A stretch of DNA of 63,998 bases, the filler included, from Olpidium bornovanus S191 (taxonomy: Eukaryota > Fungi > Olpidiomycota), in NCBI GenBank assembly GCA_017911155.1. It is 31 parts of 31 records of this genome, joined end to end, with 100 filler letters (N's around TTAATTAATTAA, not from the genome) between each part and the next. Parts side by side here need not be neighbours in the genome. Positions count along the whole stretch, not along the records: positions 38,370 to 42,613 come from JAEFCI010001520.1; 30 more parts are not named here. One strand, given 5' to 3'. Below are positions 40,171 through 41,221 of the stretch, piece after piece. Numbering within the stretch: the first letter of the stretch is position 1; the number at the start of each line of letters is the position of its first letter. The notes below the pieces were generated by a model, which was not told the origin of the DNA, ran no database searches, and saw only the letters and a list, made by a program, of their open reading frames with translations. Both the position numbers and the translations under genes were made by a program.

Positions 40171-41221
40171 ATGGTTAGTAGCCTGCAAACAGAGGGTCAA
40201 CCGACGCGGGAGGCCTCGCCGTGCCATCCCATCCCTTCCTGCCGTCTCAGGACCAGGGGCCTACTTCTCCCGGCGGCCGTGCCCAGCAGGCGCTGCTCGG
40301 CCTGCTCTCCGCCAAACAGCTTCCCACCATTTGGAGCGCGGATTGAGCCGGAACACCCCCACCTGTCCCTCGCACCCTCCCTAAACCCAGCTTTGGCTTT
40401 GCCGCCGTGGTGCCGTGGTATCGGTTGGCGTGCCATGCGAAGGAAGGACGGACGATGAAGACAGCGCGTGCAGAGAGTACAGGAACTTGGTCAACGATCC
40501 TGGAAGTTGGCCGGTCGTGACCTGGGGTACATGGCCGTGCACCACGGTGCAGAAACAGACTGGTCGCGAGGTTATTCGTTGAATGGCCACGAATTGCTAT
40601 GGTTTCTCTGGACGAATACCAGTCGCTCGACCAGCCCACACGAAGACCAACTAAGACTGACCCGTCGAAATCGGCGGTCCCTCCCGCAATCAGCAGGACG
40701 GCCCACGCTGCGACTTTGCGCAGCTGGACGCCCGGTGCCCGTAATATTTGGAGCGTCCGCAAAGCTCACACGTTGCTTTCCTTTACTCCGGAACACAGGG
40801 AAAGGTCCACGGATCTCTTGCTCGCGCCGGTAAGGTCAAGTCGCAGACTCCTAAGAAGGAAAAGAACGCTGACAAGAAGAAGCCTCCGACGGGTTAGTCT
40901 CCATCCGGTTTCTGGACTTGGGATCCGGCTCGACTAGGTGGCTCTTCTGTTGCGTTGCGGATATTTCCTTCCATCTGATCTGTTTGTCTGCCTGTTATCC
41001 TTGCCGTTGCGTTCAGGACGTGCCAAGAAGCGCCTGCTCTACAACCGTCGCTTTGTTAACGCTACCAATATGGTCGGCGGCAAGCGCAGGGTACGCCGTT
41101 GTTCTTGTTTATTTTACCGTCAGTTGAGTTAACTCAGCAAACAAGCACTGACCAGTCCCACCGTTTCTCGCTTTCTCGACGCACTTTCCAGATGAATCCC
41201 AACGTGCCGAGTGACAAATAA
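40171..41221 (+). CDS. RPS30: 40S ribosomal protein eS30 (no ubiquitin-like fusion), four coding exons
   Basis: ATG|625-nt intron (40174-40798)|[22 protein letters not shown]..|[24 protein letters not shown]|MNPNVPSDK*. Confidence 0.96.
40447..40666 (+). ncRNA. Intronic box C/D snoRNA candidate (~220 nt) antisense to 18S rRNA helix 34
   Basis: Terminal stem GACGG (40447-51) / CCGTC (40662-66). Box C-like ATGAAGA at 40455-61 and box D CTGA at 40657-60. ACCAACTAAGA directly before box D is perfectly complementary to the conserved 18S UCUUAGUUGGU. A second element, ATGGCCGTGCACCAC (40531-45), is complementary to 18S GUGGUGCAUGGCCGU with two G.U pairs. Internal hairpins are present. Confidence 0.75.

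Follow-up and report, generated by a model that had tools for sequence, protein, structure and literature searches.

A candidate box C/D snoRNA in RPS30 intron 1 of Olpidium bornovanus with antisense elements on both sides of the acetylated cytidine of 18S helix 34

Helix-34 guides and the RPS30 intron candidate

N4-acetylcytidine (ac4C) in helix 34 of 18S rRNA is conserved from yeast to plants and humans. Here we describe a candidate small nucleolar RNA (snoRNA) of the box C/D class, ~220 nt long and located in the first intron of the ribosomal-protein gene RPS30 (eS30) of Olpidium bornovanus S191 (GenBank assembly GCA_017911155.1), which carries two elements, A and B, antisense to the rRNA on either side of this cytidine. 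The window, that is the whole stretch of DNA under study, is 63,998 nucleotides long with filler included and joins 31 parts of 31 records. The piece analysed here, positions 38370-42613 of the window (~4.2 kb, from JAEFCI010001520.1), holds one clear gene, the four-exon RPS30, and to judge from the protein matches of that gene the source is most likely an early-diverging fungus.

The closest described system is that of yeast, where ac4C at position 1280 needs the box C/D RNA snR4, which pairs with both sides of C1280 and presents it to Kre33. C1280 is the middle C of a CCG and the acetylated cytidine of 18S helix 34 (Sharma 2017); all 18S positions are given here in yeast numbering, derived from the coordinates of Sharma et al. 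2017. snR4 spans 186 nt (Sharma 2017), and its two antisense elements are GS1, AACUA, which pairs with 1286-1290, and GS2, CCACCACC, which pairs with 1264-1271 (Sharma 2017). Kre33 and Sni445 cross-link to yeast snR4 and snR45 close to box D. Homologues of snR4 have been traced within Ascomycota only, a helix-34 guide was said in 2022 to be unidentified in humans, and in the literature after 2022 we found no later report of a human one. Since no helix-34 guide has been reported outside Ascomycota, the niche for such a guide would be open.

Two further groups of C/D RNAs bear on the candidate. Dipteran SNORD13 guides ac4C while looking like a canonical intronic methylation SNORD with one antisense element, and so it provides a precedent for architectural freedom among acetylation guides. 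On the same strand of helix 34, snR40/U32 methylates G1271 and snR55/U33 methylates U1269; both belong to the roughly half of yeast methylation guides that have conserved extra base-pairing beside the target. The published requirement for a methylation guide is a duplex of at least 7-8 bp that ends no more than 2 nt from box D or D'.

We rebuilt most of yeast snR4 from the oligonucleotides in S2 Table of Sharma 2017: nt 1-8 are AACUAAUA (GS1), box C is AUGAGGA, and the 3' half reads ...CCGUGGCCUUUUCCACCACC(GS2)UUUAUAGCGGUGCUUUAACUAUUAAUAACUGA. For nt 93-102 we considered CCAACUAAGA, the complement of a published mutant, and ruled it out, as the reciprocal snR45 swap construct indicates UUGUGUAAGA. 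The rebuilt yeast sequence has a second AACUA 7 nt upstream of box D, in the Kre33/Sni445 cross-link region (Sharma 2017 S2 Table). The snR4 stretch UUAACUA can pair with 18S 1286-1292 with two G.U pairs; the published model uses the 5'-terminal copy only.

When the O. bornovanus candidate is set beside snR4, the likenesses lie in size, boxes and target. Both are long box C/D RNAs (186 nt in yeast vs ~220 nt here), and both have a purine at position 5 of box C, AUGAGGA in snR4 and AUGAAGA in the candidate. On the 5' side of C1280 the antisense is CCACCACC to 1264-1271 in snR4 and GUGCACCAC to 1268-1276 in the candidate, and on the 3' side it is placed around AACUA, covering 1286-1290 and 1283-1293, respectively. 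AACUA lies inside element B of the candidate and CACCAC inside element A, and by eye the 3' halves of both RNAs show the motif order CCGUG - CACCAC - GGUGC - AACUA - CUGA. The two differ in that snR4 is an independent gene, whereas the candidate is on the sense strand of a ribosomal-protein intron and has a 75-nt extra hairpin between its elements. There is no detectable sequence homology between them, as judged by the absence of an Rfam match, although Rfam may hold no snR4 model.

SNORD13, snR45 and dipteran Or-CD1, which act on helix 45, resemble the candidate as C/D RNAs that use antisense pairing to position the cytidine of a CCG for NAT10/Kre33. All three differ from it in their helix-45 target, and the canonical forms carry the antisense in a capped 5' leader. 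Or-CD1 sits in introns, with Rps11 among its hosts, and cannot be told in its build from a canonical methylation SNORD; unlike the candidate, it has a single antisense element, and it is independently transcribed despite its intronic place. With snR40 and snR55 the candidate shares box C, box D, a terminal stem, a guide of at least 10 nt that abuts box D and to which the D+5 rule applies, and a second internal rRNA complementarity adjacent to the guide target. It differs from canonical methylation guides in having an unrecorded site, A1287, as its target, in being about twice the usual length, and in lacking a recognisable C'/D' pair and a family match. Introns of ribosomal-protein genes are a typical location of canonical C/D methylation guides in many eukaryotes.

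Box C/D features and predicted pairing with 18S helix 34

The interval 40447-40666 was the only candidate with C/D boxes and a terminal stem in the 4.2-kb piece. Its terminal stem, box C-like motif, box D and 11-nt guide all lie where a first-pass annotation, made from the sequence alone, had placed them, and its assignment of the host as RPS30 intron 1 was borne out as well (Table 1). The 5-bp terminal stem appeared in both the minimum free energy (MFE) and the centroid fold. We looked for a shorter snoRNA with a nearer box C and ruled this out, as there is no RUGAnGA between 40462 and 40656.

To set these features against chance, we made 1000 dinucleotide shuffles of the piece and required CTGA 40-300 nt downstream of a box C-like motif. 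The combination of such a motif, CTGA and a terminal stem of at least 5 bp arose 0.098 times per shuffled piece, both strands counted. For any one CTGA, the preceding 11 nt will be antisense to some site in ~5.4 kb of rRNA with a probability of 1.3e-3, and with this factor the joint expectation of the C/D features and an 11-mer rRNA antisense is ~1.3e-4 per piece and ~1e-5 for the intron strand. When RPS30 loci of other fungi, nine in all, were scanned in this way, there was one weak match, with a 4-bp stem and without helix-34 antisense. The snoRNA call is well supported both by these statistics and by its context, the sense strand of a confirmed ribosomal-protein intron, and we consider that 40447-40666 is very probably a real box C/D snoRNA.

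Element B is the exact reverse complement of 18S UCUUAGUUGGU, positions 1283-1293, and forms 11 perfect pairs with it at -15.3 kcal/mol, the guide running right up to box D. The first-pass annotation had already matched this 11-mer to a conserved eukaryotic 18S segment; we located the target 31-mer, GGTGGTGCATGGCCGTTCTTAGTTGGTGGAG, in a contig stretch scored as SSU_rRNA_eukarya (Rfam), and both the numbering of ~1283-1293 given there and the placement of A1287 at D+5 agree with the coordinates of Sharma 2017. The partner of A1287 is U40652, five nucleotides upstream of box D. When the snoRNA was folded together with the 18S segment in RNAcofold, the B duplex was recovered; the remaining pairs, between box D plus the 3' stem and the rRNA, were set aside as not meaningful for a ribonucleoprotein (RNP).

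Element B thus has what the rule for methylation guides describes, at least 7-8 bp, a gap to box D of at most 2 nt and a target at D+5, and a possible Am1287 is predicted by it. In the literature that we searched there was no record of 2'-O-methylation at A1287 or the equivalent position, in keeping with the earlier remark that the site was not known to be methylated in yeast or human. A search for a printed snoRNA with the element B guide returned only 18S quantitative PCR primers and unrelated strings.

The first-pass annotation had read the RNA as a box C/D snoRNA with a methylation guide, a reading that the boxes and the D+5 geometry support in part; it had missed a second antisense element, A, which together with B brackets C1280. 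The core of element A, GUGCACCAC, pairs with 18S 1268-1276 through eight Watson-Crick pairs and one G.U at -14.9 kcal/mol. The match can be extended because the rRNA segment AUGGCCGU is quasi-palindromic, and the extended element, AUGGCCGUGCACCAC, forms 15 bp with 1268-1282, including two G.U pairs, at -28.5 kcal/mol. Elements A and B flank C1280. In the 9-bp register they leave GGCCGU, 1277-1282, unpaired with C1280 in its middle, and in the 15-bp register A and B together span 1268-1293 without a gap. A role of element A in guiding methylation of U1269 or G1271 from a box D' was considered too and ruled out, as there is no CUGA-like box at the required distance downstream.

Acetylation, methylation and other readings

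The bracketing of C1280 by elements A and B makes a role as acetylation guide at least as likely as one as a pure methylation guide. In weighing the readings we took into account, as priors, that a genome has many methylation guides and one helix-34 guide, and we tentatively prefer, as the slightly better explanation, an acetylation guide at C1280 that probably also brings about Am1287. We infer the following course for the processing of the RNA, its binding of proteins and its two modification activities. The snoRNA would be freed from RPS30 intron 1 through splicing or debranching followed by exonucleolytic trimming, which would stop at the snoRNP built on the C/D kink-turn. Element B on 18S 1283-1293 and element A on 1268-1276 would then hold the pre-rRNA, and GGCCGU (1277-1282), with C1280 at its centre, would be kept unpaired beside the C/D core. 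C1280, left unpaired and in this model 3 nt away from that end of the B duplex which faces box D, would be offered to the acetyltransferase Kre33/NAT10 for N4-acetylation, as it is by yeast snR4. Given the canonical methylation geometry of element B, A1287 would probably also be 2'-O-methylated, by fibrillarin of the same particle; alternatively, methylation may be the sole activity.

A number of observations weigh against this reading, and the first of them concern the snoRNA itself. Its box C deviates from RUGAUGA at position 5 (A for U), and the spacers between stem and boxes, 3 nt on the 5' side and 1 nt on the 3' side, are looser than in an ideal kink-turn. The whole molecule folds with no better energy than shuffles (z = -0.31), so the internal helices, although present at the places first noted for them, carry no statistical weight. 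Rfam cmscan, run as had been proposed at the outset on the whole piece and on 40420-40700 (281 nt), gave no relevant family at E<=10, and for that reason the first description of the snoRNA as hidden was a fair one.

We also found no homologous element in nine RPS30 loci from eight species of early-diverging fungi (two loci of Allomyces and those of Catenaria, Blastocladiella, Tieghemiomyces, Dimargaris, Mycoemilia, Gonapodya and Basidiobolus), none of them close relatives (at most 84% identity over 66 aa). The conservation among chytrid and zygomycete RPS30 introns that had been suggested as a check was therefore not seen in this set. snoRNAs are known to change host genes. The composite pattern of A followed by B had 0 matches in metagenome contigs. 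For the 15-mer of element B plus box D there were at least 120 metagenome matches, and after a filter for box C, stem and element A all of those among the matches listed looked like chance occurrences in prokaryotic DNA. The JGI matches to RPS30 were intronless metatranscript contigs, and a protein-space search by way of open reading frames (ORFs) spanning intron 1 yielded nothing useful on relatives or on a second RPS30 copy that is described below. In this second copy, intron 1 matches at 40400-44 and 40746-823, and the snoRNA stretch is unalignable at 90%: where our intron has 301 nt with the snoRNA among them, the second copy has 281 nt of other sequence.

Three raw-read RNA runs under the same species label had zero reads even on the RPS30 exons and were hence uninformative, and of the RNA data the Logan contigs alone could be used. 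These assembled contigs show intron 1 as retained, spliced or alternatively spliced and, being assemblies, have no bearing on a processed ~220-nt species; a low-depth contig at 40358-40569 (run X7) ignores the snoRNA ends. Together with a splice site internal to the candidate, the X7 contig tells us that pre-mRNA or retained-intron RNA is present, and no more than that.

The fold energy, together with the absence of a homologue and of evidence for a processed RNA, would suit a non-functional stretch of a long, GC-rich first intron, where boxes, stem and complementarity to rRNA have come together by chance. RPS30 genes of early fungi usually have a long first intron, the orthologous ones that we read (~283-585 nt) lack the element, box C is not only non-consensus but stands apart from the stem, one run uses an alternative 5' splice site within the candidate, and the candidate was picked out of a very large scan. 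Set against this are the joint expectation of the features, ~1e-4 per piece and ~1e-5 for the intron strand with element A left uncounted, and the outcome of the same scan in the nine control loci, where nothing comparable turned up. We regard a chance constellation as improbable.

Further observations speak against acetylation as the role of the snoRNA. GS1 of snR4 precedes box C, right at the 5' end of the RNA, whereas element B abuts box D, and the order of the elements is thus reversed relative to snR4. Within the stem of the candidate nothing 5' of box C is complementary to the target, unlike in snR4. The known acetylation guides bear the antisense to the 3' flank in a capped 5' leader and do so without a methylation-competent guide. 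The significance of element A is moderate only: in shuffles of the 184-nt snoRNA interior against the 33-nt upstream rRNA flank, a Watson-Crick run of at least 8 bp was present in 5.5% and a run of at least 15 bp including G.U pairs in 0.7%, and we regard these values (p ~0.055 for the 8 Watson-Crick pairs, 0.007 for the 15-bp version) as suggestive, not strong. In the 15-bp register element A pairs C1280 itself, which is a misfit with an acetylation pocket.

That last register is better suited to an ordinary 2'-O-methylation guide, precisely because C1280 is paired in it. Fibrillarin at box D would then methylate the A1287 equivalent, element A would be accessory pairing that makes binding to the structured helix-34 region more stable, and there would be no acetylation. 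Among C/D snoRNAs no other class is nearly as common as methylation guides, the perfect 11-bp B duplex without a gap satisfies D+5 and the rules for length and gap, and conserved extra pairing directly upstream or downstream of the target is common: at least 24 yeast snoRNAs have it, the helix-34 guides snR40 and snR55 among them. Elements A (15-bp) and B over 1268-1293 without a gap would be as for an extended guide. This account nevertheless asks for a coincidence, in that a new target and its accessory pairing would happen to bracket one of only two acetylated cytidines of 18S rRNA. Nor does it draw on a recorded methylation at A1287 or on a demonstrated conservation, and at ~220 nt the RNA would be unusually long for a methylation guide; in the yeast set only one methylation guide is known to be longer than 170 nt. 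We see a methylation-only role as possible but somewhat doubtful.

The gap-free coverage of 1268-1293 and the large size of the RNA would also fit an assembly chaperone that modifies nothing. Seated on an unbroken run of 26 nt in the 5' strand of helix 34, a C/D snoRNP would prevent the helix from closing while the 90S particle is assembled, as snR190 or the processing domain of U14 do; with snR190 there is already a C/D snoRNA that has a methylation-like guide and for which no methylation has been detected. Positive evidence for a chaperone is lacking, and a duplex of canonical geometry is normally methylated, and we consider this the least probable of the readings, a very improbable one.

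If the preferred reading, that of an acetylation guide at C1280, is correct, the candidate may possibly be the first helix-34 acetylation guide outside Ascomycota, intron-encoded and with the antisense to the 3' flank moved from the capped 5' leader to the position of the D guide. An RNA processed from an intron would be unable to keep a long 5' leader, which would rationalise this relocation. In such a guide, one particle could serve Kre33/NAT10 in the acetylation of C1280 and fibrillarin in the 2'-O-methylation of A1287, and this would raise the possibility of a single C/D particle that installs ribose methylation as well as base acetylation. On its sequence the candidate would be a new box C/D snoRNA and, at a likelihood of about one in three, a new architectural variant of the acetylation guides.

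As it comes from an early-diverging fungus, the candidate lets an ancestral RNA-guided acetylation of helix 34 be tested, and an acetylation guide outside Ascomycota would suggest that snoRNA-guided acetylation of helix 34 predates that group. The layout with a guide at box D would broaden the search image for acetylation guides. As a template in the search for the animal and plant guide, it would offer a pre-D or pre-D' antisense to UCUUAGUUGG combined with an internal antisense to GGUGGUGCA. If the RNA is a methylation guide only, it would add A1287 as a 2'-O-methyl site that is specific to the lineage and lies in a helix of functional importance, which would be a routine and useful annotation.

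The RPS30 host gene, its transcripts and a second copy

The best protein matches of the RPS30 product were fungal 40S S30 proteins, with up to 84% identity (Tieghemiomyces) and PF04758; further matches in Glomus, Basidiobolus, Catenaria and Allomyces, at 74-82% identity, were likewise all PF04758. All three introns are backed by GT..AG joints in RNA contigs of public runs. Introns 2 and 3 were spliced out in every RNA run, and poly(A) is found at ~41330. The joint of intron 1, 40172/3 to 40798/9, GT..AG, was present in RNA contigs of runs X3 and X7.

Table 1. Positions in the window of the RPS30 gene and of the parts of the snoRNA candidate in its first intron.
Feature	Position	Strand	Basis or remark
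RPS30 (eS30) host gene	40171..41221	+	translation, protein matches, RNA contigs
RPS30 exons	40171-40173 (ATG only), 40799-40892, 41017-41090, 41192-41221	+	66-aa product
RPS30 intron 1, 625 nt, GTTAGT...CACAG, phase 0, right behind ATG	40174..40798	+	hosts snoRNA candidate
Candidate box C/D snoRNA, ~220 nt	40447..40666	+	boxes, terminal stem, guide
Terminal stem, 5' half, GACGG	40447..40451	+	pairs with CCGTC 40662-66
Box C, AUGAAGA	40455..40461	+	consensus RUGAUGA, 6/7 positions; UGA and terminal GA kept
Internal helix GGTCAAC/GTTGGCC	40489-95/40506-12	+	sequence
Alternative 5' splice site GG/GUACAU inside candidate (slash, splice point)	40527..40528	+	joined to normal 3' splice site
Internal element A, core GUGCACCAC (40537-45), extended AUGGCCGUGCACCAC	40531..40545	+	antisense to 18S
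Long internal hairpin GACUGGU.../...ACCAGUC with inner AUUCGU/ACGAAU	40558..40624	+	MFE and centroid folds, without statistical support
Helix GACTGGT/ACCAGTC, arms	40558-64/40618-24	+	sequence
Internal helix ATTCGT/ACGAAT	40574-79/40589-94 or 40612-17	+	sequence
Element B / D guide, ACCAACUAAGA (DNA ACCAACTAAGA)	40646..40656	+	adjoins box D, 11-bp complement of 18S
Box D, CUGA	40657..40660	+	sole CTGA within searched stretch 40400-40720
Terminal stem, 3' half, CCGUC	40662..40666	+	pairs with GACGG 40447-51

Intron 1 was kept in the dominant poly(A) contigs of runs X1 and X2, though introns 2 and 3 were spliced there, and in two other runs it had ~1/5 of the depth of the spliced or exon contigs. 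When it is retained, the ATG opens a 96-codon ORF that ends at the UGA within box C, so the retaining transcripts would be unable to make eS30. The main contig of run X5, with a depth of 68, has a GT..AG joint from the alternative 5' splice site, 40525/6 to 40798/9. There the site is joined to 40799, whereby 40174-40526 is kept and the 3' 140 nt of the snoRNA are removed. Use of this splice site and production of the snoRNA would exclude each other.

An ATG-only first exon followed by a long phase-0 intron (~283-585 nt) was seen in five RPS30 loci of Allomyces, Catenaria, Tieghemiomyces and Blastocladiella. The position of this intron behind the ATG is thus old and conserved; it is often missed by gene callers, and several database models are partial or wrong at the N terminus.

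The second RPS30 copy is ~7-12% diverged, being a paralogue, an allele or the gene of a co-cultured relative, and matches 40400-40444 and 40746-41322. Three RNA runs show its expression, which reaches 0.2-0.6 of that of the main copy.

Two repeats lie upstream. At 39044-39095, in a region without RNA coverage, there is an inverted repeat whose 24-nt arms (CCGATAACTTCGTTATGAGCGCCT / AGGCGTTCATAACGGAGTTATCGG) match almost perfectly and enclose a 4-nt loop. The second is an 18-nt direct repeat of 89% identity, 39837-39854 vs 40159-40176, by which the start context of RPS30, AAAAA..GCAAAAATGGTT, is doubled 322 nt upstream of the real start; a first exon or leader that was once duplicated may have left it behind.

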